The notes under the pieces: model-generated | Told to the model about the DNA's origin: nothing | Database searches by the model: none | The model's input: the letters and a program-made list of their open reading frames with translations, nothing else | Made by a program: the position numbers and the translations under genes | In this document: positions 3,545 to 40,021 of the stretch, piece after piece | Position numbering within the stretch: position 1 is the first letter of the stretch | How the letters are laid out: every line of letters begins with the position of its first letter | Assembly (NCBI GenBank): GCA_020536535.1 | Contig: JAHLWZ010000361.1 | Location: 1-40,021, forward strand | DNA length: 40,021 bases | Direction of reading: 5' to 3' | Source of the DNA: Pelomyxa schiedti | Lineage: Eukaryota; Protista; Evosea

Positions 3545-6500
3545 ATGACATCACCACTAACACTACTGTCATACGATGCAATGACAGCACCACCAACACC
3601 ACTGTCAGACGATCAACGCGTGGCCATGATGCTCGAAGCGTGCCGGCGTGTCCCGGTCATGCCCGAGTTTCCGTCACCCACGTGGGACATCAACACTCAC
3701 TTCCATGGTATTAGAGAAACCATGCTTCACATTGCGTGCTCGGGCGGGGACGAGTCGGTTGTTAAGCGGCTCCTCGATGTGGGTGCATCACGCAACCCCC
3801 CGATCGACCCAAACTCAATCGACAAGTATGGTGATACGCCACTGTGTTACGCTGCTTGTTGGGGCAAGGAGGCAGTGGCGAGGATGTTGGTGGCGAGACC
3901 AGATGTGGATGTGAACAAGGGGTGCCCACTGGTCATCGCATGTAGTAGTTGCAGAATGGGTGTGGTGGTGGCGTTGCTTGAGTGCCCACGTGTGGATGTC
4001 AACTTGGTGGTGCAAATAATAGAAAAGCTTGGGGGTCAAACAGCACTGCTCGCAGCTTGTGAGCGGGGATTCGTGGAAGGGGTGAAGGTTCTGCTCAAAG
4101 TCAATGGAATTGACACAAACTGCAAAAACAGAGACGGTGAAACACCACTTGATGTGGCAACAAGATGCAAATTCACTGATATCTGCAACCTCTTGAAGGA
4201 TCACAGATCTCAATCCTCAAGGCCCACCACTGTAAAGCAGCTGAAGAGTAACCCTTCACATCAAATATTAACTTTGCACACACACACATCACTCACACTT
4301 TGTGTTCAAAAGGAGAACTCACAGAACTGAATGCGCGAATCACACAGTTGGAGGATGAAAACGCGAAGAACCTGAAGCGTCTCCAGGATGAAAGAGAATG
4401 CAGATACGTCACCCAACAAAGGTTTCGTGAACTGCAACGGAAATGTTTGTGCCCCCTTCTCCTTTCCTTCCTTCCTTTTCCTCCCTTTGGAGATTGCACT
4501 TCTTCTTTTTTTGCTTCTGACACTTGTTCTCAATCATCAATGTGAACAGATCAAGGGAAACAGAATTCAGAAGTGTGTGTTTGTTGTTGGTCTTATGATA
4601 ATAATATTAATCTCTTTTGACGCATTCCCTCCTTACAGATGGAACTGCAAAGGTTGCAAGAAAAAAGCGTGTTGGACATGACTGCAAAGAACAAGGGTTT
4701 TTCATACCTTTTCTTTCTTCTTGTTTCAATTTCAAAAAAGTAAACTCCTTTGCTCACCCCCCAAACCCTTTTTTCCCTTCTTTCAAAACAGAGCTCATGG
4801 AACTGGAGGCACACATCACAACATTGGAGGAAGAAAGTGCAAGGAACCTGAAGATCTTTTGTGACGAAAGAGAGTCTGAACAACAAAGACTTCGTGATCA
4901 CCAACACTGTATGTGTTGGAGTCAACACCCCTTTTTCAACCTCCCACGCATACATAACATAAGCCACACTCTTCATTATTCTAACTGTCAAGCCAGACAT
5001 GAATCACGTGATGTCACATGTTGAACAAGGAGATGGCTCATGGCGCAACATTCTTCTCCCTGAAAACAACAGCCACAACAACAAGCACTGCAAGCCATCA
5101 AAAATCAGGATTGCCTTTGAGGAATTTGCCTCTTTTGATGAAATTGTGTGTGGCGTCTGTCCTCTTCAAATGGTGCTCTTTCCTCTCTTGCTTGACTTGA
5201 AACCTCCTCTCCTTTCTCGTTTGATTTGTTTCTCACTCTGAAACACAGGTTGTGAAGCTCATTGTTTCAAGGAAGTTTGGGGTGGAACCATCTCAGCAAC
5301 TCATTTTCATTGGTCCCGAAAACAACACCTCTGAAGAAGTGCTGATGGATTCATCCATAACCTTTGATGACATCATTCAACAACAACAACAAGGCAACAG
5401 CAGCACGGACAGAGTTGTTGTTCAATTCCAAGTGCGAATCAAATCAACGGTGTCAATACAAGAGACAGACCTGAAAGTTGTGTCCACACTTGGATCTGGA
5501 TCGTATGGAACTGTTTTCAAGTGCACCTTCCTTCACAACACCGCAACCACAAGCACTTTCTCCTCCTCATCGTCGTCATCATCAGAAACAACGTTTGTGG
5601 CAGTAAAATCGCTTCACGAAATCATCAAGTCTGAGTTCAACATCACACAATTTCAACAGGAAGCTCTGGTGAGTGAGATGGGTGAGGGGGGGGGGGTTCG
5701 TTTTCTTTTCTCTCTGAGTTTGAAAAAATTCCACTCAGAAACTAACTAACACAAAACTCACAGATTTCATCGAGGTTGAGGCACCCCAACATTGTGAGAT
5801 GCCTTGGAACGTGCGTCACGAGCACAGGGTCACTCTGGATCGTCTCTGAACTCATGGAATTGAGCCTCAGACAGCTCCTTCATCATGTTTGTTTTGTTGC
5901 TCCCGCCTTAAAATATATCTATCAATTGCAGAATCTCAATACACACACGCATTCAACACAGAAAACATTGACATTCATGGAAGTTGTTGCAGTCTCTTCA
6001 GGGATTGCCAAAGGAATGACAGCACTCCACATGTTTGTTTCTTTATTGATGTCTTCTAATTCCTTCTTTCTGTTGTTGACCAAAACATTATGTGCCATCA
6101 CCTCCTTCCATGATTGATGACAATTCAACACAGGAGGAATTTCATGCACCGAGACCTGAGCAGCAACAATGTTCTCCTGGATTCTTGTGGAATTCCAAAG
6201 ATTGCTGATTTTGGTGCTGTTATTCCTCATGTCACAACGTTATAACTAAGCATTATCATCATAATTTGTAACTTGTGCGTGCGAATTGCAGGAGTGTCGA
6301 GAGCTCTCCCAACCAACAGTGCTGGCACTGGCACCGCTCTCCTTCGTACTTTCACGAATGGGGCTGGAACACCAGTTTACCTGTCACCACAGATGCACAC
6401 TCGTCACTACGGAATTAAAGGTTGGTGGAAAAGTGTTCATCAGCACATACTTCACACTGATCATCAACCACCTCTAGGTGACATGTGGGAGTTTGCAGTT

Positions 6501-10500: not shown

Positions 10501-12758
10501 CTCCAGCAAGTCTTGGGCAACAAGATTGTGGGGTTGTTGTTGTTGTTGTGCTATTTTGGGAGTGGTGGAGACTGTCCGCGTTGCAATTGTTGTTTTTGCT
10601 GTGGCAGCAGGGATTTTGCGACACACAGATTGGAACAGTTGCTGGACTTCATCATTCTGGGAGTACTCAACAGCTGTTTTTCCCTCTTTGTTCTGTTCCA
10701 ACAGGAAAATTATAACACATAACAAGCAACACAGGGAAAAACACCACACCTTGATGTGAGTGCCAGTGCCCACACAAGACAGAAGTTGTTTCACAATTTC
10801 ATGATTTCCCCTTCTGGAGGCAATGTGAAGTGCGGTCTGAGAGAAAGATGAAAATTAAGTTTAAGTGTGTCAAACAACAGACAAAGGAAAGGAAACACAA
10901 AGGACATTCACATACATCACCCTTTTCATTTGACAGAGACCCCCAAGAAAAGTAGAGATGACATTGAGGAATGCAAAAAAAAAAAAAAAAAAACAAGCTC
11001 ATACTTCCTGAAAAAAAAAAGAGTTAATTAATTAAAGAAAGAATCAAGGTGAGTTCATGTACAATCTGGTGGCCAGTAGTGTAAAGCAGTAAAAATTTCC
11101 CGAAAAGTTAGAAACAAAAAGCTTGGCAGGTTGTGTGTTTACTTACTCCCTGAGATATGGCAGCCCAAAAAGAAAGAAAGAAAGTGTCACAGAAAATTGA
11201 AGCAATAAAAGGGTGGGTTTACACACATACTAAAGCATGCCATAAAGACATGGAGAGAGATAGAGCAAAGAAAAGAGTGACAATTGAAGCAAGTCATAGA
11301 AATCGATGAATAACAACGCCATAAAAGGATGGGTTTACGCACATGCTAAAGCATGCCACAGAAACAGAGAGCGCAAAGCAAAGAGTGAAAATTGAAGCAA
11401 GTCATAGAAATCGATGAATAACAACATAATAAAAGGATGGGTTTACACACTCCCTGAGTTTATCACAGAGAGCAAAGCAAAGAGTGAAAATTGAAGCAAG
11501 TCATAGAAATCGATGAATAACAACGCAATAAAAGGATGGGTTTACACACACGCTAAAGCATGCCATAAAGACATAGAGAGAGATAGAGCAAAGCAAAGAG
11601 TGAAAATTGAAGCAAATCATAGAAATCAATGAATAACAACGAAATAAAAGGATGGGTTTACACACACGCTAAAGCACGCCATAAAGACATGGAGAGAGCA
11701 AAGCAAAGAGTGAAAATTGAAGCAAGTCATAGAAATCGATGAATAACAACATAATAAAAGGGTGGGTTTACACACATACTAAAGCATGCCATAAAGACAT
11801 GGAGAGAGATAGAGCAAAGAAAAGAGTGACAATTGAAGCAAGTCATAGAAATCGATGAATGACGACACAATAAAAGGAGGGGTTTACACACACACTAAAG
11901 CATGCCACGGAGACAGAGCAAAGCAAAGAGTGAAAATTGAAGCAAATCATAGAAATCGATGAATAACAACGCAATAAAAGGATGGGTTTACACACACGCT
12001 AAAGCATGCCATAGAAACAGAGAGAGCAAGGCAAAGAGTGAAAATTGAAGCAAGTCATAGAAATCGATGAATAACAACACAATAAGGGTGGGTTTACACA
12101 CATACTAAAGCATGCCATAGAGAGAGCAAAGCAAAGAGTGAAAATTGAAGCAAGTCATAGAAATCATGAATAACAACGCAATAAAAGGATGGGTTTACAC
12201 ACAGTCTAAGGCATGCCATAGAGAGAGCAAAGCAAAGAGTAAAAATTGCGCAATAAAAGGATTGAGATTATGAGTACATACAGTCTCCCCCTGGATTTCA
12301 GGTTTTTAAAGGAAAGAGAATGTAAACCTATAATCAGGATGGATAGTAGTAGTATCACACACAATCTGTTTGTGAAGCAAGAGATACAAGTGTGGTTAGT
12401 GACGAGGCACATCAACCAGTGGCGTACTTGAGAATTGACATCAATATTCATTGACAACAGGAATTCGACACACCGTGGTTTCTCCCCCCACGTCGCTGCA
12501 TGCAACGCTGTCTGTGGTGTATGTGTGTGTGCAAAAAAACCGAATTGTTGATGCTTGTGGGGAAAAAAAAACATAGAAAAAAAAAGATTTGTTCAACATT
12601 CACACCACTCGTTCGTCATTAACGGAGTTTAGCAGGCCGCGGTCACCGGCCAACAGACGCTCCAGTGCGTAGGTGTTGCCGCCATACGCGGCATCGAACC
12701 ACTCAGTGGGTCCGACGCGTGGACCCCCCGTGGGTGAAGTTGTTGTTGCTGCTGCCAT
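7290..12758 (-). CDS. Ankyrin repeat - coiled coil - ubiquitin-like - TKL kinase (paralog K2) with an expanded microexon array
   Basis: ATG 12758 MAAATTTSPTGGPRVGPTEWFDAAYGGN..LLNSVNDERV; exon 2 TALHAATWGEKPRCVEFLLSMNIDVNSQ ends 12428; exon 3 TALHIASRRGNHEIVKQLL starts 10836; then NKEGKTAVEY, coiled coil, Ubl and kinase motifs as in K1; stop at 7290. Confidence 0.9.
10916..12365 (-). other. K2 microexon array: 14 single-codon exons, one 9-nt (or 3-nt) exon and one 6-nt GD exon
   Basis: AG-exon-GT units in transcript order: ATT 12363-65; GGGGAGACT 12282-90; ACT 12203-05; TAT 12102-04; CGT 11996-98; TGT 11892-94; TAT 11776-78; CGT 11666-68; CGT 11550-52; GGA 11451-53; CAT 11343-45; TAT 11227-29; GGA 11147-49; ATT 11063-65 (weak donor gtacat); GAA 11005-07; GGTGAT 10916-21. 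Donors are gtgtgt, gtgcgt, gtaagt, gtatgt or gtatga. Confidence 0.8.
11195..12250. repeat. Tandem repeat of about 100-120 bp units (about 9-10 copies); each unit is one intron plus one 3-nt exon
   Basis: Recurring core gagtgaaaattgaagcaagtcatagaaatcgatgaataacaac..ataaaaggatgggtttacacacNNNctaaagcatgcc. Confidence 0.95.
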
Positions 12759-13517
12759 AGGTGGGCGGCCAGTGGGGTGAGAACCAAAAGATCAAAAAAA
12801 AAAAAAGATCTGGTTCTGTCTAGAGAAGAAGCCAGAACCATTTTTTTGGTGCTAACACCAAGACAAGGGTGGATTGGGTGGCTAATACCAAAATAAATAA
12901 ATAAATCCCTAATTTGTGGCTGGCAAAACAAGTTTTAGTGTGGGTGATTGTTTGGGGGTCACCAAAAAAAAAAGGTGCCCCCTCCTCATCAGTTAACAGG
13001 TAGTGACGGAAGAACCAGCAGCTGGGTATCCTTTCGAGTGGTGAGTATGATGGATGGAGTAAAAGCAAGAACATGATACAACTAGAGCATGCAACAAAGC
13101 ATGCCAAACAACAACAAGCAACCTCCACTTGAAGAGAAACAGAGGACGCGGAGATACCGGCATGATAGTGGCATGGTGATTACACTACAAGAGTTACTGC
13201 AGAATCGCGTTCTCAGCCGGCACTGAAGCGGACATTTCCGGCACTGGTAGCATGCATACTGCCAACAGGGATTAGCACAGAAATGATGGGAATCATGCAT
13301 ACAAACGTTCATACAAATGCAGCGGGAATGCTAGATATGTAGAAGCTTCGAAGCTCGGAAATTCATTCCAAAGCTATGTGGCGTTAGTATTCCGCTTGGT
13401 TGTATTTGTTTTTATTGGCTTGTATTTACATTTCATTAAGCAGTTAATTCTATTGGGATTAATTGCACGCACGTGGTAAAAAAGACAGGGGGGTGGGTGG
13501 GTGAGTGGAAAAGAAAC

Positions 13518-14295
13518 CTTGATGTTGGTGGGAATCCCCACAGATGAGAGAAGTCGTTGTTTCCCCATTTCAACCTCCCCTCCTCTGGAGGCTATGTGAA
13601 GTTCAGTTTGAGAAAGATAGCGCGATAGAGACAGAGAGATGAAAATTAAGAGAGGATGCTCATGCATAAAAAAACCCTTATTGTTTTTTATTGTGTTATT
13701 CATCAACTTATTTATTAACCTCAATTTATTAATAAATAAGTTCTCTCCAACTTCAATTTTCACACCTCACTTTTCAATGATTAACTCACCCCCAACGCCA
13801 CTAACTATTTACTTTATTGGCATTGTTCATCATGAATTTCTTTGACTTGCTTCTCTCTGTTTCTTGAATGAAAGGGTGAGGTTAATAAATAAGTTGATGA
13901 ATAACACAATAAAAAACAATAAGAGTTACACACGAACTGGGGAGGGAAAAAAAAGGAAGTTAGAAAAATGACTAATATATAATGCAAACAAAAGGGTTGG
14001 AGGATACAGCGGAACGCGCCGCAAGACAGAGTAAGTGAAGTGAAAATCGAAGCAAGTCAGAGAAGGGAAAACATGAACGTTTTACACACATCCTGGTGGC
14101 TCAGTGTGAGGATGTGCACAACGAACAAACAATACCAAACAATACCAAACAATACCAAACAAACCTGTAAATTGGCATCGACATTCGGGAACAGGAAATC
14201 AACACACTGTGAGCTCCCATTAAACCCAGCATCGAACCACTCGTAGGGCCCGACCAGCTTGTGCTTGTGACCCCCGTCGATGCCGTCGACGATGG
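13518..14295 (-). pseudogene. Degenerate ankyrin-microexon paralog (A5)
   Basis: Exons 1 and 2 are fused in register (EWFDAGFNG|SSQCVDFLFPNVDANLQ). Microexons GAT 14090-92 and TTC 13934-36 are intact; the middle unit lost its AG; the exon 3 acceptor is mutated to caa (TELHIASRGGEVE); no obvious ATG. Confidence 0.7.
13677..13923. repeat. 47-bp perfect inverted repeat (13677-13723 / 13877-13923) bracketing an inverted piece of the microexon region
   Basis: cttattgttttttattgtgttattcatcaacttatttattaacctca and its reverse complement. Confidence 0.85.
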
Positions 14296-14345
14296 TGGTT
14301 CCGTGATCGAATTGAATCAGCCGAAAAACCAAGCTACTGTCTCTT

Positions 14346-16556
14346 TCATTCATCACTGCTGCCACTTGTATCACTTGAATTTTCGTTGGGCTTGTTGTTG
14401 ATATACCAGTCAACGTCAGCCTTTGTGAGCCCAACGGTTTTCATTGTGACAGATGTGTGAAGTGGAGAGACCAACACCCATTGCATGAAGTGGTCCCTCA
14501 CAACAGAGGCTGTCATTTCAGGGAACACACGCATCAGCATCTTCCACATTCCCACTGAAACAGAGGTAATTTTGTGATTGTCTGCCAGTCTGGTTATCTC
14601 GTTCAACTTGACATGGAACTGGTTGATGAGCCACTCAGTGCAACCAACTCTCTTCTGGTGCATCATCATCGCGAGCAAGTTGTTGTGATTCACCTTGATT
14701 TGGTCTTCAGTCATGACGAATTCATTGATGAGCCACTTGACAACTTTTCCAGAATTAACATAATCACATGCAGAAAAGGCCTCTGCAACGTCAGATGAAG
14801 AGAAGTCGCCATAATTGACAATCTGGCGGGTCTGTGAAACATCGGCATCTTCAATCAATCTCTGGACGATAGAGGACCTGTGGGAAATGCATGAATTGAA
14901 TTGCCGCAGCAAAACCAATGTGAATGTGATGAACTGACAGTTTTCGACAGCAGAGAGCACTGCAGTTTCCCTGATGTTGCGCAACATTGCATGTGAAAGG
15001 AACCACTGAATGCCCCCGATTCCACGGTTGCCCCTACCACCACCACAAATCTCACTGAAAATCCTCTCTGTGCTGCTGGGATCATCATCGGAATTCACAC
15101 CATCCATCACGTGGAACTTGCTCTCCAACCACTCTGCCACTTCAGTGTTGTTGTTTGAAAGGCTTCTTGCAAGACACTTCCTGAGGTTGGGTTGCGTTGG
15201 AGGCATTTTTGCTTTTTCCAACAACAACATCACCACTGCCACACTGTCTTTCTTGTTCCCACATGCATCGTAGACCACTTGGAAGCTGACCGGGCTGAGG
15301 GTTCCAAAGTTTTCAAACAGCCACTCAATGAGCCTCACATCAGCGATTTTGTTGCATGCATGTGACAAAAGTTTTTGTGTTGGTTCAACATGAAAGCTTT
15401 TGATCACCCACATGAGTCCCCTGCTGTTTTCACACTGTATTGTGGAGAACTCCGTCACTGAGAAGGTTTTCTTGATCCACTCACATCCTTCCTCGAAGTT
15501 GTTGTTGTTGTTTTTGGAGTCACCGCTGCTGTGGTGCTGTGAACAATTCCTAATGAATTTTGCAAGAACTGCCCTGCCGTAGTATTCCATCACATCAGAA
15601 CTCTCCAGGCCGAACACCTTGATGCAAAGCTTCACAGCTTCCAAGAAGACCTCAGGGGCACACTGACTGTGAGGCGTGACAATCTTTTCCTCACAGGAGT
15701 CCACCACACCAAGAAGGGATGATGATGCCATCCACTCTGCAGTGTCGATGCGACCACGAAAAAGAGCAGCTTGAAATGGTTTCATGAGCTCCCATGGCTC
15801 TGTTCCACCCACACCACCAGCAAACCTTGACATCACCCACTTCACAACATCCAAATGGCCACCACTGCACGCTGCATGCAAAATACTGGTGGAATGGTCA
15901 TCCATTTCCTTGATTTCATCCAAAAGGTCAGACTCACCGACCACAGGCCACCTCAGAGCACCACCCCTCCACGGTGTATTGCCATTGTCAACGAGTTCCT
16001 GTGCCAGTGCCAGGTGTCCCCCTTTGTGTTGAAAGTATTAATTTGTTTTTGTCATTCAACTTTTGGAGTTTTATAATAATAATAAAAATAATAAAAATGC
16101 GCATGCCACTCTACGATCTGGTTCTATTAGCAAGAGTACTTGTTATTAATTACCTTCACAAAGACCACCAAGCACAGTGAGGCACTCCCTTGCGTTGTTC
16201 CTCGTCCTCTTGCTTCCCACAATCCATTCCACGCACCTCACGCTCCCCACCACCCCGGCACACCCAAGAGCGAAATACCGCGACGTCAACCTGCGGGTGG
16301 ACCCCCCGACGCACGGCCACCACAACTTAGAGCCCGGCGCACTCACGCCCATAATCGCCCTGCAGGCCCGCGGCACCAGCGGGAACAGCGCGTCGGCGAG
16401 TCCCACAATCCAGCAACACTCGGGCCTGGTCATCTGCGGCCCGCGGGCGGCTGTTGGGTCCAACACAATCGGAACCACCACGAAGTCCCACACGACACGC
16501 GACACCATCATCACCCGTTCTGTCATTCGACTCTTCGCCACTCCATCTTCGCTCAT
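14346..16556 (-). CDS. Large protein with degenerate ankyrin-like helical repeats (lineage-expanded family), two exons
   Basis: Exon 1 MSEDGVAK...ECLTVLGGLCEG|gt, intron about 16022-16153, then GHLALAQELV... continuing into the 532-aa ORF with ILHAACSGGHLDVVKWV and NNTEVAEWLESKF repeats. Confidence 0.75.
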
Positions 16557-16779
16557 TTTTCCCTTTTCACAGAAGCCGTCACCGTCGTTGATGTCAGCTC
16601 CGTCGAGGCACGGCTGCCAGTTGGGCCCATAATTGGCACCAGCGGGAACACTGGCGTATCTGAGTCCCAGAACCGCGAAAACAAGTTGTTGCACCGCAAC
16701 ACTGGCTTTTTTTTTTACTCACTTGGTGTGCCTTTCCAAATGACGTTTGATAGCAATCACTTGGCTTTCCTTCATACCT

Positions 16780-17164
16780 TTATGAAGTTGCTCCTTGCTT
16801 GTTGCTGATGTACCAGTCAACGTCAGCCTTTGTGAGCCCAACGGTTTTCAATCTCCTGATGATGCATGACTTGTGGGAAATGCGTGAAAATCCTCTCAGT
16901 GGTGCTGGGATCTGTGAATTCACAGATCCATCACATTGAAATTGCTTCCAACCACTCTGCAATTTCTGTGTTGTTGTTGGAAAGACTTCTTGCAAGGCAC
17001 TTCCTGAGCTCCTGTGGTGTGGGAGGCCTTTTTGCTTTTGCCAATGGCATTACAAACTTCACCACTGCCACACTGTCTTTGTTGTTTCCCCATGCATCAC
17101 GGATGACTTTGAAGCTGACTGGGGCGAGGTTTGGAAGTATCAATGCCGCGTCGCCTCGGCTCAT
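16780..17164 (-). pseudogene. Deleted, partial duplicate of the C-terminal region of the 14346-16556 gene
   Basis: PVSFKVIRDAWGNNKDSVAVV..LRKCLARSLSNNNTEIAEWLE and KTVGLTKADVDWYI match, with large internal deletions and frame breaks. Confidence 0.75.
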
Positions 17165-17236
17165 CTGGCTCGCTCATTTTTTCCTTAAAAAAAAAGGCCA
17201 AACAAAGCAACAAACCATAAGGTTCGGTATTGTCTT

Positions 17237-18292
17237 TCATTCCTCACTGTCACTGCTGTCACTCGACGACGATGATGGGTTGTTTGGAGCAGGGGGTGGT
17301 TGTTGGTGTGTTCCTTTTGTTTTTGCTGGGAACAGCTGCCCCACTTCATCATTGTAGCGGGTAGCAAGAGCTGTCTTTCCATACTTGTTCTGTGATGTGA
17401 TTAACCCCCACATGCACACGCACGTGGTAAAAGTCACGGGTGGGTAGTGGAAAAGAAAAAAAAAACCTTGATGTTTGTGGCAATCCTCACACATGAGAGC
17501 AGTCGTTTCACAATTTCAACCTCTCCTCCTCTGGAGGCTATGTGAAGTGCAGTCTGAAAGGGGATAGAGAAAATTAAGTGTCAAACAACAAAGAAAGGAT
17601 GCTCATACATCGCCCTTTGATTCAACAGATTTGATTCAAGAGAGAAGAATAAAGTGAGGTAAATAAGTTGATGAATACTCAATAAAAAAAAGGGTTACAC
17701 ACGAACTGGGGTTATAGGAGGGAGAAATGAAGTCAGAGAATTTTCAATTCAATGCAAATAAAAGGGTTGGAGGATACATGCTAAACGCGCCGCAAGACAG
17801 AGCAAGTGAAAATCGAAGCAAGTCAGTCAGAGAAGGGAAAACAGGAAAGGTTTTACACACATCCTGTGAAGTATGTGTTTGTCAGTGTGAGAATGTGCTC
17901 AACAAACGAACCTGTAAATTGGCGTCGATATTCACTGACAACAGGAAATCAACACACTGTGAGCTCCCTCCCCACGTGGCTGCATGTAATGCTGTCTGTG
18001 TGTTGTGTTGGTATACAAAGCCCACAAAACGAAAAACAAAAAGTTAATATCATCAGTTCATAGAATCGTAACAAAAAATATCCAATAAATTAATTATTAT
18101 GAAAATTGCACGTGTGCACACAACAACCTCTCCTTTTCGTTCGTTTACAGAGTTGAGTAGCCCTGGGTCGAGCGCCAGCATCGCTTGCAACTTGTCGGCG
18201 TTGCCATTAAACGCAGCATCGAACCACTCGTCGGGCCCAACACGTGGCCCCGGCCCGCTTGTGCTTGTGGCGCTCGTTGATGCTGCTGCCAT
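17237..18292 (-). CDS. Short ankyrin-only paralog (A4) with four microexons and no kinase
   Basis: Exons 18292-18128 (MAAAST..LNSVNERKGE), 17995-17912 (TALHAATWGG..ANLQ), microexons D/H/F/GD, 17553-17467 (TALHIASRGG..TNIK), 17389-17237 (NKYGKTAL..SDSEE*). Confidence 0.8.
17609..17863 (-). other. A4 microexon set: GAT (D) 17861-63, CAT (H) 17778-80, TTC (F) 17703-05, GGCGAT (GD) 17609-14
   Basis: cag GAT gtgtgt; tag CAT gtatcc; cag TTC gtgtgt; aag GGCGAT gtatga. The joined product ANLQDHFGDTALH matches the ankyrin consensus N-x-x-d-x-x-G-x-T-A-L-H exactly. Confidence 0.85.
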
Positions 18293-18528
18293 CACAATGA
18301 TGATGATGGTTCTGGTAATGAAACTGATGAATTCTCCAAAGGATCTCGATCTCCACCGATTAACTAAAATAAATAAACAAACTTCGCTTCAGAACGAACA
18401 CGTACGTCACTCACAGCCCTACAACCAAAATCAGGTGCACTCAACCAAACACAATCAACAAATCTGAGAGAAAGGATTTCTCGTTTGATCGACACAAATA
18501 ATGCACACTCCCTGGTCTTTGCTGTTGC

Positions 18529-22243: not shown

Positions 22244-25200
22244 TTATGATGATGATGAGTGAGTGTTGGGAGGGCGGCCGGGGAATGATGCGGCCATGTT
22301 TGCGAGGCACGTGGTGATGTGTGCGGTCGCGTCGTGGTTGTCGCTTGTTGTTGTTGTTGATGTGGCGAAGTTTGTTGCGGAGGTACCGAAACTTGTGAAT
22401 ACGATCTCGGCACATGTCATCAGCATTCTCTCTATCACCGGAAACGATGGCCGGTTGATCTCTGTGTGTGTGCTGGTGAGTTATGTGGTGATATGGGAAT
22501 ATTAATTTACATTTAATCGCTGTTTGATAGTTACCACTTGTATTATTAGCTTCTCCACTTCACCCACCCCCCTTTGTTGTTGTCGCAGTCACATTAATTT
22601 CAAATGGATTGGGGTAATTCCAAGGAGGGAAGGAACGAACCGAGGATTGAGAGACAAGACTCAACAACGATTGAGAACTGACCAACGCACGCAGGGTGCA
22701 CGTTGCTCAACTCTGGGTCCAACCGCAGTGCCTCAATGATTGCATTCCTTCGGCTGAGGCACTCCGCAACGGGATAATCTCCAGCATCAGTGCAAAGCCG
22801 GTCCACCTCTGTGTGGGTTGTGAGTCACAGTGAAAAGGGAGAAAACTCCTTTTTATTGCATGCAGACAACGAACCGGCAATTTCCGGGGGTGACAGCTGA
22901 GTTCTCTGGACTCTGATGAACTCATGAATCTGAATGGCAGCCTTTGGAACCGTGGCCTCTGGTGTGGTGCCTCTGAGAATTTCACTCAACAAAACTGCAA
23001 ACTCCCACATGTCACCTGGAGATGGATCATCAGTGTGAACAGTATATGATTTTCTAAACCTTTGATTCCGTAATGACAAGTGTGCATCTGCGGGGAAAGG
23101 TAAACCGGTGTTCCAGCCCCATTTGTGAAAGTACGAAGTAGAACCGCACCATTGCTTGGGAGAGCTCTCGACACTCCTGCAATTCACACAAGTTACAAAT
23201 TACGATGATGTTGTGACATGAGGAGTAACAATACCAAAATCAGCAATCTTTGGAATTCCACAAGAATCCAGGAGAACATTGTTGCTGCTCAGGTCTCTGT
23301 GCATGAAATTCCTCCTGTGTTGAATCAGTCGTTGGAGATGTAGTCAACAAAAGAGAAAAAGAGAGATCATCAAGAAACAAACATGTGGAGTGCAGTCATT
23401 CCTTTCGCAATCCCTGAAGAGACTGCAACAACCTCCATGAATGTCAAACTTTTCTGTGGAGTGTGTGTGAGCCCAACAAAGAAAGCGGGAGGAGGAAGGT
23501 GGGAGCAACAAAACAAACATGATGAAGGAGCTGCCTGAGGCTCAATTCCATGAGTTCAGAGACGATCCAGAGTGACCCTGTGCTCGTGATGCACGTTCCA
23601 AAGCATCTCACAATATTTGGGTGCCTCAAGCTCGATGAAATCTGTGTGTTTGTGTATTATGTGAGTTCAAACCACCGTCCCACTCACTCACCATAGCTTC
23701 TTGCCGAAATTGGGTGAAGTTGAATTCACTCCTTAATACGTCATGAAGTGCTTTTACTGCCACAAACGTTCTTGTTTCCGGTGACAATGACGAGGAGGAG
23801 GAAGTGGTTGCAGTTACGTTGGGAAGGAAGGTGCATTTGAAAACAGTTCCATACGACCCAGACCCAAGTGTGGACACAACCTTCAGGTCTGTCTCTTGNN
23901 NNNNNNNNNNNNNNNNNNNNNNNNNNNNNNNNNNNNNNNNNNNNNNNNNNNNNNNNNNNNNNNNNNNNNNNNNNNNNNNNNNNNNNNNNNNNNNNNNNGT
24001 GGTGCCGTGTTGTGTGTGGTTGGTTGAGAAAGGGGAAGGGGATGGTAATTAGTGAGCAGAACAAACAGTGTTGGAGATCAAGAAATCTTTGTTGGTCTGA
24101 TGCTCTTTCATCACTTTCTTCCATCAATGTTGCAATCAAGTCCCCCAGATCTTTTGTTTTTTGTTTTTTTTTGGAAGGAAAAAAGAGGGGAATTGAATTT
24201 GAACGACTAAAGAGAAAGAAATTTAAAGACCCTTGTTCCTTGCAGACAAGTCCAACAAATTTGCTTCTTTCTGTGGCAAGATGTGTTGAAAGAGACAGAT
24301 AGTACCATTCAGAAACAAACACCTCTTCATTCTGTTTCAGGTTCCTTGCGTTTTCTTCCTCCAATTGTCTGATACGGGCCTTCAGTTCTGTATTCTCTTC
24401 TGTTTCACAAAGTGTGAGGTGTGAGATGATGTTTGAATGTTTTAAGAAGAGGGGGTTGCTCTCAACTCATCTGTTGCTTTGCTGTGATTTCCCAGTTTCG
24501 TTGGATGGTGATCATGTCACCACCTTCTTCAAGTGTGTTGGATACCACATTGCAGGTCATGCTGGTGTTCAGTGTTCTTGTTGTAGTCGCTGTTGGTTGT
24601 TGCTGTAATAAGGTGGGTGATAATACTGGCGATGGTGGCTTGTTTGGAGCAGAGGCTGGTCGCGGTGGAGGGGCCACTCTCTGCGTTGTTGTTGATGTGG
24701 CTGTGAACAACTGCCGCACTTTATCATCGTTTGAGCACTCAAGGGCCGTTTTCCCACTCTTGTTCTGTGCCCAGCACACACGTAAATCACAACACAGTCA
24801 GGGGGGCAGGCATGGGTGAGGGCGGGGGAAAACCTTGATGTTGGTGTCAATCCCTACATATGAGAGAAGTTGCTTCACAATTTCAACATTTTCTGCTCTG
24901 CAGGCAATGTGAAGTGCAGTCTGAGAGTGGATGGAGAGATGAAAATTAAAAAGTTGTGTCAAACAGCAAGGAAAGAAGACACACATCACCCTTTCATTCA
25001 AAAGAGCCCAAAAAGAGATATGATATAAGCTGGGAGCACAAGTCAAGAAAAAAAAGACCATACTGCCTGATGAAAAACAAAAAAAAATAGAAGTGGATAA
25101 ACATATACCAAACACGCCAGACAGAGCCAAGGCAACGAGTGAATTGATGAGAATATTCAAAAAGAGTTGGATACGCACATTCTAAACAGGCCAGAAAGAA

Positions 25201-25802
25201 CAATTCAAGGAGTGAAAATTGAAACAAGTCAGTGAAATTGATGAATAATGAAAAGGGGTGGGGCCTTGGAAGATACACACATTCTAAACACAGAGTGAAG
25301 AAGAGAAAAATGACAAGTCAGAAGGAAACAGGAAGGTTTTTACACACATTCTGTGAAGTGAGAAAACAAGTTTGTTAGTGTGATGAGGACAAGTAGTGCC
25401 CAACAACAAACAAACCTTGGCATTGACGTTGATATTCATTGACAACAGGAACTCAACACACTGCGTTCTCCCACTTGCAGTGGCCGTATGCAACGCTGTC
25501 TGTGCGCGTGCCAATTATCAGCTTGGATGGAGTCCAAAACAAAAAAGGAGTGCAAGAAATAAAAAAAAAAAAAAATATTATGTGCGAAAGGTAAGAGGTG
25601 GGTGGTGCCCAAATCGATTTTATTTATTTTCTAGGCATAGGCACATAAAACCAACCGCATGATTCCACAGGTCTACGGAGTTGAGCAGCCCGGGGTCGGC
25701 GGACAGCATCCCCCGCAGCTTGTCTACGTCTCCAGATTGTGCGATGTAGAACCACTGATTGGGCCCAACCGGCGCGCGTCTCGTTGCGGCCGATGCAGCC
25801 AT
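22244..25802 (-). CDS. Ankyrin repeat - coiled coil - ubiquitin-like - TKL kinase (paralog K3); the Ubl region falls in gap 23899-23998
   Basis: ATG 25802 MAASAATRRAPVGPNQWFYIAQSGD; exon 2 25499-25416 TALHTATASG..NVNAK; microexons; exon 3 from 24920 TALHIACRAEN; NKSGKTALE; kinase GSGSYG, VAVK, HRDLSSNN, DFG, YLSPQ. Confidence 0.88.
24985..25350 (-). other. K3 microexon set: AAT 25348-50, AAT 25281-83, AAT 25179-81, GCA 25064-66, GGTGAT 24985-90, plus one decayed unit near 25100-25115
   Basis: cag AAT gtgtgt; tag AAT gtgtgt; tag AAT gtgcgt; cag GCA gtatgg; aag GGTGAT gtgtgt. Product NAK-N-N-N-A-GD-TALH. Confidence 0.8.
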
Positions 25803-37953: not shown

Positions 37954-39096
37954 TTACACTTTGAGGATGCCATCATCATGCATGGTGATCAACCTGCGGC
38001 AAACCTCCTGGAATAGGTTCATTACATTGTCACCGCTTTTGGCACTGCATTCAAAGAATACAGGTTCGCCACCCCCGGTAAGGCCTTCTGGGAATGTCTC
38101 ATGCAGGAATTTCTGTGCCTCAGAGGCCTCCACGGCCCGCTGGGTGTCAAGGTCCGATTTGTTCCCCACAAAGGCTAGTAATAGGTTCTGTGGAGCACAT
38201 AGTTTGAGTTCATCCACCCACTTTTTGGCCACGCTGAATGATTCCTGCGGAGGAAATCAGTTTGAAACTTGATTGGGAAAGACGCACAGGACTGGTAATA
38301 TCATAAACTGGGGAGCCGGAAAGCGGCAAGTTAATACAAGGTGAAAGAAAAGATACTAACCTATAAGAGCAACACGCGCATCTACTGAGAGTTAACTCAA
38401 TGAAAAGATCTAAAGATAGTGCATACTTCGATAGTACATTGGTGTCAACGATCGGTAACGCTCTGAGTTGAGTGATTACATGAAGTGGCGAAATCAAAAT
38501 TGTGCATGGTACCTTGGCCCGCAGTATCCCACAGCTGCTGAATGTTAATAACCACGGTATTATCACTAAAAAATTATTCAATTAAAAATGTACTCAAGAA
38601 CCTCAAGTTTGACTGTGCGGGAATCAACGGACAGCCTGTGAGCCTGAAATGATGCCCTTTATTGGCAAAAGTTAAAAAAGAGTGAAACCTATTTTTAATT
38701 AAATAATAATTTCGAGTTAGTGGGAATTTGGCAGCTGCTCTCATATGTGGTAAGTAGAAATTACCCAATTGTCGGCAATGCTTCAACAAACTGTCCCTGG
38801 ACCAGGCGCCCAACGAGGCAAGTCTTCCCGGCACTGGTATGTCCCAACAGCACCACTTTAATACCGACTTCCAACAAATTCGGCCCACTTCCACTACCAT
38901 TGCTACTTGTACCACTGCCCCCTACCTTCACTATCAAAAACAAAAAAAAAAAGTTAGAGAAAGGGGTACCATGCACGCAAAAAAAAAAAAAAAACCAAAT
39001 GGAACCACACAAAAGCCGACGGGGAGGTAGAAACAAAAACAAAACAAAAGCCCAACCTTGAGACGAATTTGAACTCGAAGAGTGGCGACACCCCAT
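37954..39096 (-). CDS. Rab5-family GTPase with N-terminal MGC acylation motif and no C-terminal prenylation cysteines (ARA6/RabF1-like)
   Basis: Spliced product MGCRHSSSSNSSQ..IKVVLLGHTSAGKT..PTIG|ASF..LWDTAGQ|ERYRSLTPMYYR..VYDIT..VGNKSD..ECSAK..HDDGILKV*. Confidence 0.85.
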
Positions 39097-39293
39097 CGCC
39101 CGCCACGCACGTTTGATTTCACGGAACCAACAATCTCCGATCTCAAATCTACCAATCAAAGCGGTTTGGAGAATGGCAGAACACCCAACCTCANNNNNNN
39201 NNNNNNNNNNNNNNNNNNNNNNNNNNNNNNNNNNNNNNNNNNNNNNNNNNNNNNNNNNNNNNNNNNNNNNNNNNNNNNNNNNNNNNNNNNNNN

Positions 39294-40021
39294 CCGGTGA
39301 CAATGACGAGGAGGAGGAAGTGGTTGCAGTTACGTTGGGAAGGAAGGTGCATTTGAAAACAGTTCCATACGACCCAGACCCAAGTGTGGACACAACCTTC
39401 AGGTCTGTCTCTTGGATTGACACCGTTGATTTGATTCGAACTTGGAATTGAACAACTGTGTTCGTGCTACCGTTTCCTTGTTGTTGATGACGATGAATGT
39501 CATCCAAGGTTCTGTACGAGTCATTCAACAGCTGTTCCTCAGAGTTGTTGTTTTCTAGACCAATAGTGAAAATAACTTGCTGAGATGGTTCCACTCCAAA
39601 CTTCCTTGAAATGATGAGCCTCACAACCTGTGTTTGTTTGTTGGTTTCCCCCCAGTATGCAGTGAGAAACAAAGCAAACAAGAGGGGAGGAGGTTTCAAG
39701 AGAGGAAAGAGCACCATTTGAACAGGACAGAAGCCACACACAATTTCATAGAAAGCGGGAAAGTCTTCGAACACAATCCTGATTTGCGATTGCTTGCAGT
39801 TATTGTTGTTGTTTTCAGGGAGAATGTTGCACCACGTGCCTTCTCCTTGTTCAACATGTGACATCACATGATTTGTGTCTGTTTGACAGTTACAATATTG
39901 GTGGTGCCGTGTTGTGTGTGGTTGGTTGAGAAAGGGGAAGGGGATGGTAATTAGTGAGCAGAACAAACAGTGTTGGAGATCAAGAAATCTTTGTTGGTCT
40001 GATGCTCTTTCATCACTTTCT
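39294..40021 (-). CDS. Second variant of the K3 Ubl-region fragment (other bubble branch)
   Basis: Near-identical to 1-729 with SNPs and indels (CKQSQ vs CKRSQ, FYEIV vs FNEIV, one fewer CAA); same 121-bp flanks. Confidence 0.85.

Follow-up and report, generated by a model that had tools for sequence, protein, structure and literature searches.

One-codon exons in series build a beta-turn in a small ankyrin gene of Pelomyxa schiedti

The ankyrin gene A4, on the minus strand of the window (the whole 40,021-nt stretch analysed, from contig JAHLWZ010000361.1 of Pelomyxa schiedti), very probably makes a spliceosome-processed transcript for a small, stand-alone ankyrin protein, whose D-H-F-G-D beta-turn, between the two full repeats, is put together from three one-codon exons and one two-codon exon. 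The observations comprise its splice sites, a product with 15 nt between exons 2 and 3, and an RNA, spliced in part, that had lost the outer introns and kept the inner three. The assembly used comprises 52,367,397 bases in 5337 contigs; the genome has been described as 52.4 Mb in 5337 scaffolds, with 7.43 introns per gene and 98.4% GT-AG, in a paper that also names BioProject PRJNA672820 (PMC8887013).

The A4 model encodes 167 amino acids in 501 coding nt, with no internal stop and no kinase. Exon 1 (18128-18292), whose ATG was placed from the open reading frame, contributes 55 residues of a degenerate first, or capping, repeat; as read from the sequence, the N-terminus is rich in Ala, Ser, Thr and Gly and has no evident hydrophobic core. 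The joint between exons 1 and 2 (18128-17995) is present in both RNA runs. Exon 2 (17912-17995, 28 aa) codes for ankyrin helices and ends in the codons for NLQ; exon 3 (17467-17553, 29 aa) starts with TALH and again codes for ankyrin helices. Both were identified with Pfam Ank PF00023 (22.1 and 24 bits, respectively, against a cut-off of 21.1) and with RNA contigs, and the top matches to exon 3 were PDB ankyrins and DARPins. Exon 4 (17237-17389) carries an unsplit NKYGK spacer, a capping helix, a Pro/Ser/acidic tail and the stop, and is covered by RNA contigs reaching 17234 and 17215.

Between exons 2 and 3 lie, in order, intron 1 (17864-17911, 48 nt), micro-exon 1 (17861-17863, GAT, Asp), intron 2 (17781-17860, 80 nt), micro-exon 2 (17778-17780, CAT, His), intron 3 (17706-17777, 72 nt), micro-exon 3 (17703-17705, TTC, Phe), intron 4 (17615-17702, 88 nt), micro-exon 4 (17609-17614, GGCGAT, Gly-Asp) and intron 5 (17554-17608, 55 nt). 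All five introns are GT..AG. The four micro-exons are all in phase 0, make up 15 of the 501 coding nt and fall within the size by which micro-exons are defined (at most 27-30 nt, with GT-AG flanks). Elsewhere in the genome, a contig end (G000:C2267:13-200) holds a 96% copy of the first exon region, which may be an allele or a recent duplicate. An intronless ORF of 532 codons with an N-terminal ankyrin match occupies 14346-15944 of the window, and a broken partial copy lies at about 16780-17200, right behind A4.

The preliminary description had placed GAT, CAT, TTC and GGCGAT between NLQ and TALH, and all of these coordinates hold on the minus strand. Its count of exactly four AG..GT-bounded units was slightly overstated: the 358-nt interval contains 7 internal AG and 19 GT, and with introns of at least 40 nt it permits three 15-nt parses (DHFGD, DVSFR and DVISC), of which only DHFGD fits an ankyrin spacer. 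Joined, the units give an open frame, NLQ-DHFGD-TALH. The repeat spacing is 33 residues with the micro-exons and 28 without them. In 150 unrelated ankyrin proteins, which are generic many-repeat ankyrins taken from a profile search with protein representatives, the modal spacing was likewise 33 (452 of 721 cases), with Asp or Asn at position -5 in 68% and Gly at -2 in 68%. DHFGD is thus the canonical five-residue spacer that it had been taken for, restoring the spacing of 33 with Asp and Gly at the favoured positions. No dinucleotide shuffle of the interval, out of 5000, scored as high (P < 2e-4); any [DN]xxGx parse appeared in one of the 5000, and at least three AG-NNN-GTRT units in none. Units of 5 or 7 nt, which the GTGTGT donors would permit, were rejected on their poor scores and on the RNA, which shows the first GT in use at unit 3. 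A 12-nt unit at 17601-17590 was also discarded, since it would leave an intron of 7 nt.

RNA was taken from two runs (X1 and X2) of one sample in one study, and the assembled contigs were aligned to positions 12410-18400 of the window. Contig 11 of X2 (392 nt, depth 16.4) spans exons 1, 2, 3 and 4. Exon 2 corresponds to record positions 32-115, with no difference listed inside it, and exon 3 begins at 131, so that exactly 15 nt stand between them. The last 7 nt of this insert were read directly as the last base of micro-exon 3 followed by micro-exon 4. The first 8 nt had been aligned to the 5' end of intron 1 at two mismatches, the number predicted from the units; the presence of GAT and CAT was deduced from this fit and from the length of the insert. 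In contig 5 of X1 (642 nt, depth 7.1) introns 1 and 5 are cut at the predicted sites, with use of the micro-exon 1 acceptor and a joint at 17553-17609, and introns 2, 3 and 4, which are missing from the X2 contig, are kept. The donor of micro-exon 4 is used in both runs. The X1 form carries a premature stop and is most simply a splicing intermediate; it could also be a stable intron-retention isoform. One all-included contig and one intron-retaining contig are the forms of A4 found; assembled contigs drop rare forms, so that some skipping in A4 may occur. The exon 2-exon 3 junction for which an RNA search had been proposed was tested by this contig alignment, and the spacer NIK|NKYGK chosen for comparison also stands, its intron (17466-17390) being spliced in both runs.

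AG close to GT is also a signature of recursive splicing. On that resemblance the A4 units might be recursive splice sites, or else chance AG/GT pairs or an assembly artefact, the 15 nt having come from elsewhere by way of a processed copy or editing; we consider this extremely improbable. Recursive sites leave zero bases, yet 15 matching bases are found in the mRNA, and the same RNA contig refutes chance pairs or an artefact for A4. The reading is further opposed by two other runs, which contain 99% of the words of the region, and by X1, which reads the inner introns with 1 difference from the genome in 254 nt. A processed copy was rejected on a search of the assembly, in which a single locus carries A4 exon 2 and the second-best match shows 75% protein identity. 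We conclude that the micro-exons are present in the mature mRNA, on the strength of 7 nt read directly and 8 nt by mismatch fit. The single base difference in X1 lies at 17663, in the retained intron 4 (A>G on the plus strand), and may be an allele or an error.

Splicing of A4 would probably proceed by intron definition, each 48-88 nt intron being recognised across itself and excised singly, a route suggested in C. elegans for micro-exons that adjoin short introns (PMC8378409). Once one flanking intron had gone, a 3-nt unit would be the new end of a long exon and would never need to be recognised by itself. Removal of intron 1 would make the Asp codon the end of exon 2, and removal of intron 5 would make Gly-Asp the start of exon 3. 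The chain would then close inward with the inner introns last, an order suggested by the one X1 contig. The 358-nt interval offers a compact natural test case for splicing, and for its order, with exons too small for exon definition.

Exon 2 of A4 has 31 matches in the genome, and the family numbers about 30 genes. In 17 of the 20 genes for which both exons were in hand, the sequence can be parsed into arrays of 8-30 units; paralogs on C219, C1936, C2052, C2552, C530 (about 182 kb), C422 and C1075 lie outside this 20-gene set. The predicted layout of the 17 begins with Ile (15 genes; Leu and Met once each) and a 9-nt unit, mostly G-x-P, continues with variable one-codon units, and closes with Gly (17), Ile (15), Glu or Gln (16) and Gly-Asp (17), so that the slot of A4 micro-exon 4 is common to all of them. 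The loops would be 11-33 residues long, their middle rich in Y, L, I, D, H, P, F and G; the array introns are 44-170 nt and are tandem copies of one another. Within the window, K2 (10837-12427, minus strand) is parsed as 16 units, I-GET-(10 one-codon units)-G-I-E-GD, and K3 (24921-25415, minus strand) as a short array, N-N-N-A-GD, with one decayed cassette. Kinase fragments recognised by Pfam come after both K2 and K3, on their strand, and are candidates for linkage to them. Since A4 ends after its capping repeat, it may be a sensor module without an effector, a decoy or adaptor for example, although this is a guess. An ankyrin ORF with unsplit spacers (3545-4330; Pfam Ank_2, 90.7 bits) also lies upstream of kinase fragments and shows that the genome has ordinary ankyrin exons as well. 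Near-identical blocks of coiled coil and kinase start at 1-1700, 23700-24400 and 38760-39970 stand beside 100-N scaffold gaps and may be recent duplicates or scaffolding redundancy.

The family intervals (27 kb) contain the motif YAG-N3-GTRYR 222 times, and other window sequence (73 kb) contains it 7 times; a peak at a unit length of 5 comes from reading these sites at their second GT. A 16-nt cassette pattern had 183 genomic matches against 2 for the control. The 100 of these 183 matches that were listed form tandem clusters, mostly on contigs with family exons. Introners, which are made by transposons, are defined as similar introns scattered over unrelated genes. Further clusters or single matches were seen at C530 (about 182100-182600), C422:18526 and C1075:18546 and on C219, C1936, C2052, C2552, C2470, C2695 and C3085; some short contigs among these appear to consist of array sequence alone. 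Sister cassettes were compared in 32 disjoint pairs with a difference of 2.4% between their intron cores; codon positions 1, 2 and 3 differ in 17, 16 and 2 pairs and the residue changes in 23. Positions 1 and 2 are thus about 50% different, roughly 20-fold more than the introns, and the variable exons of the array paralogs appear to be under diversifying selection. Among 249 three-nt units of the array paralogs (L060-L077), 173 are NNT; none is a stop, none begins with GT (hence no Val), and Gly is always GGA, presumably to keep stray GT dinucleotides away from the acceptor. This codon use resembles a stop-free NNT library minus the GT-forming codons. The beta-turn of the family would then have grown and shrunk by tandem duplication of an intron-plus-codon cassette of about 100 nt, and diversifying selection on codon positions 1-2 would have given these ankyrin sensors a hypervariable loop for binding, held between two fixed stems, I-GxP and G-I-E-GD; binding is suggested by the position of the loop.

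A3 (13470-14260, limits approximate, minus strand), 3.5 kb from A4, is a decayed copy of it in which a deletion has fused exons 1 and 2, and which has lost units 2 and 4 together with the exon-3 acceptor. A3 also has an inverted cassette-like piece at about 13670-13860, and its intron 1 contains a 10-nt tandem repeat. A short paralog on C1160 (L078:1545-1914) has a 370-nt interval with predicted units D-A-D-GE, a canonical spacer made through other slots than those of A4. The claim of the preliminary description that the 3-nt exons are real is borne out by the RNA, the shuffles, the 33-residue spacing, the losses in A3 and the D-A-D-GE paralog alike. Its further claim, that A4 probably shows the ancestral state and that the K2 array arose from it by expansion, was not supported. 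That A4 keeps an ancestral five-residue layout, and that the arrays grew from its two middle exons, would agree with several observations: A4 and C1160 both rebuild the canonical spacer, the middle units of A4 resemble the two cassette types repeated in the arrays, and the three short genes (A4, C1160 and K3) share one side of a branch in a tree built from the conserved exons, micro-exons left out. That branch is weak (72/26), however, the tree has no root, and the nearest neighbour of all three short genes is an 11-unit array gene. The three inner introns of A4 (introns 2, 3 and 4) are themselves homologues of the cassette that the arrays repeat in tandem (z 8.5, 8.6 and 9.6), and two of them resemble each other (z 4.8). 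The introns of C1160, in contrast, are of the terminal G>I and E>GD types (z 4.9 and 5.2), and K3 mixes repeat-cassette and terminal types and includes a dead cassette. Each of the three short genes thus retains another subset of the array slots, and the union of the three is already array-like. At most one short layout can be ancestral, and loss of array units explains all three; contraction therefore fits at least as well, and we think an ancestral A4 unlikely.

The RNA result for A4 supports the view that the one-codon units arrayed in about 30 related genes are genuinely coding, and moves these arrays from a pattern to a supported gene structure. The public annotation mostly misses them: the models retrieved for paralogs (named Pelo_) end inside the array or retain just the 9-nt unit. 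A4 validates the splice signals but is no control for array splicing, since array genes have Ile as their first unit, possess extra fixed slots and do not rebuild D-x-x-G-x from three units. Both RNA runs contain transcripts of the second ankyrin gene on C328 (L060:3410-4500), which has a predicted 10-unit array: contigs aligned on K2 exon 2 (8 differences) match exon 2 of this gene.

Two readings of array splicing were weighed. Array paralogs might splice in variable subsets of their one-codon exons, each gene serving as a library of loops, and we give this close to an even chance. Every unit is predicted to be frame-neutral and stop-free, sister cassettes hold different codons in near-identical introns, and fixed stems flank a variable core with the residue preferences given above; diversifying selection, however, would act equally on a loop with all units included, and the sole product seen, that of A4, includes every unit. 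The other reading is that array paralogs would include all units and that the diversity of their loops arises in the germ line alone, through duplicated cassettes and codon change between paralogs or alleles. The product of A4 accords with this, short introns favour intron definition and hence inclusion (PMC8378409), and two public models, Pelo_4541 and Pelo_16377, whose basis is not stated, join the first 3-nt (Ile) unit to the 9-nt unit in order; faithful inclusion would nevertheless be demanding with up to 30 near-identical splice-site pairs in tandem. We put this reading, too, at nearly even. A codon-by-codon splicing library, in which up to about 25 variable stop-free one-codon exons per array gene would yield a somatically diversified receptor repertoire with A4 as its RNA-proven minimal case, is proposed tentatively, at somewhat below an even chance.

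A4 shows that the spliceosome can build protein one codon per exon, several in series, within a conserved structural motif. If the arrays are alternatively spliced, they would give a single-celled eukaryote a new way of diversifying its receptors; if they are not, they would still represent an unusual residue-by-residue evolution of the length and sequence of a loop. Skipping within the arrays, which we hold to be a possibility on the low side of even, would if shown make them categorically new. The literature was covered incompletely, and within it no paper was found on chains of consecutive one-codon exons or on these arrays.

Single micro-exons of 1-3 nt are known from the Drosophila homothorax 3-bp exon (PMC7392893) and the 1-nt exon of Arabidopsis APC11 (PMC4674806), and from a plant micro-exon survey (PMC8831610), which includes an adjacent pair of 5 and 12 nt. 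The A4 units share with these the canonical GT-AG flanks, a frequent preservation of frame and the tendency to be missed by annotation. Unlike such single exons between normal exons, A4 has three of 3 nt and one of 6 nt in series, spelling a conserved structural motif, and its paralogs are parsed with up to 30.

The micro-exon genes (MEGs) of Schistosoma have exons of 3-81 nt, mostly 15, introns of 0.1-5 kb and secreted products with signal peptides (10.1101/2023.06.21.545858). Like the arrays, they line up units that mostly preserve the frame (10-20 short exons per run) and belong to a multigene family; MEGs also vary by skipping of central exons, as the array genes might. The arrays differ in that the exons would be of one codon, the 44-170 nt introns are copied in tandem and the effect is confined to a single loop of a folded ankyrin domain. 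A4, which works as a chain of micro-exons, was itself rejected as a MEG, having 15 of 501 coding nt in micro-exons and introns of 48-88 nt, which are not long. The ROCO LRR genes of brown algae (PMC11378527, PMC3341825), candidate immune receptors, are likewise repeat-domain sensors with tandem exons under diversifying selection; there the exon is a whole LRR repeat that is shuffled or skipped, whereas here the unit is one residue within one repeat junction. [quoted passage not shown] The 33-residue ankyrin scaffold is the same, and the array genes would enlarge the same beta-turn, although DARPins are engineered libraries and the likeness is a structural analogy only.
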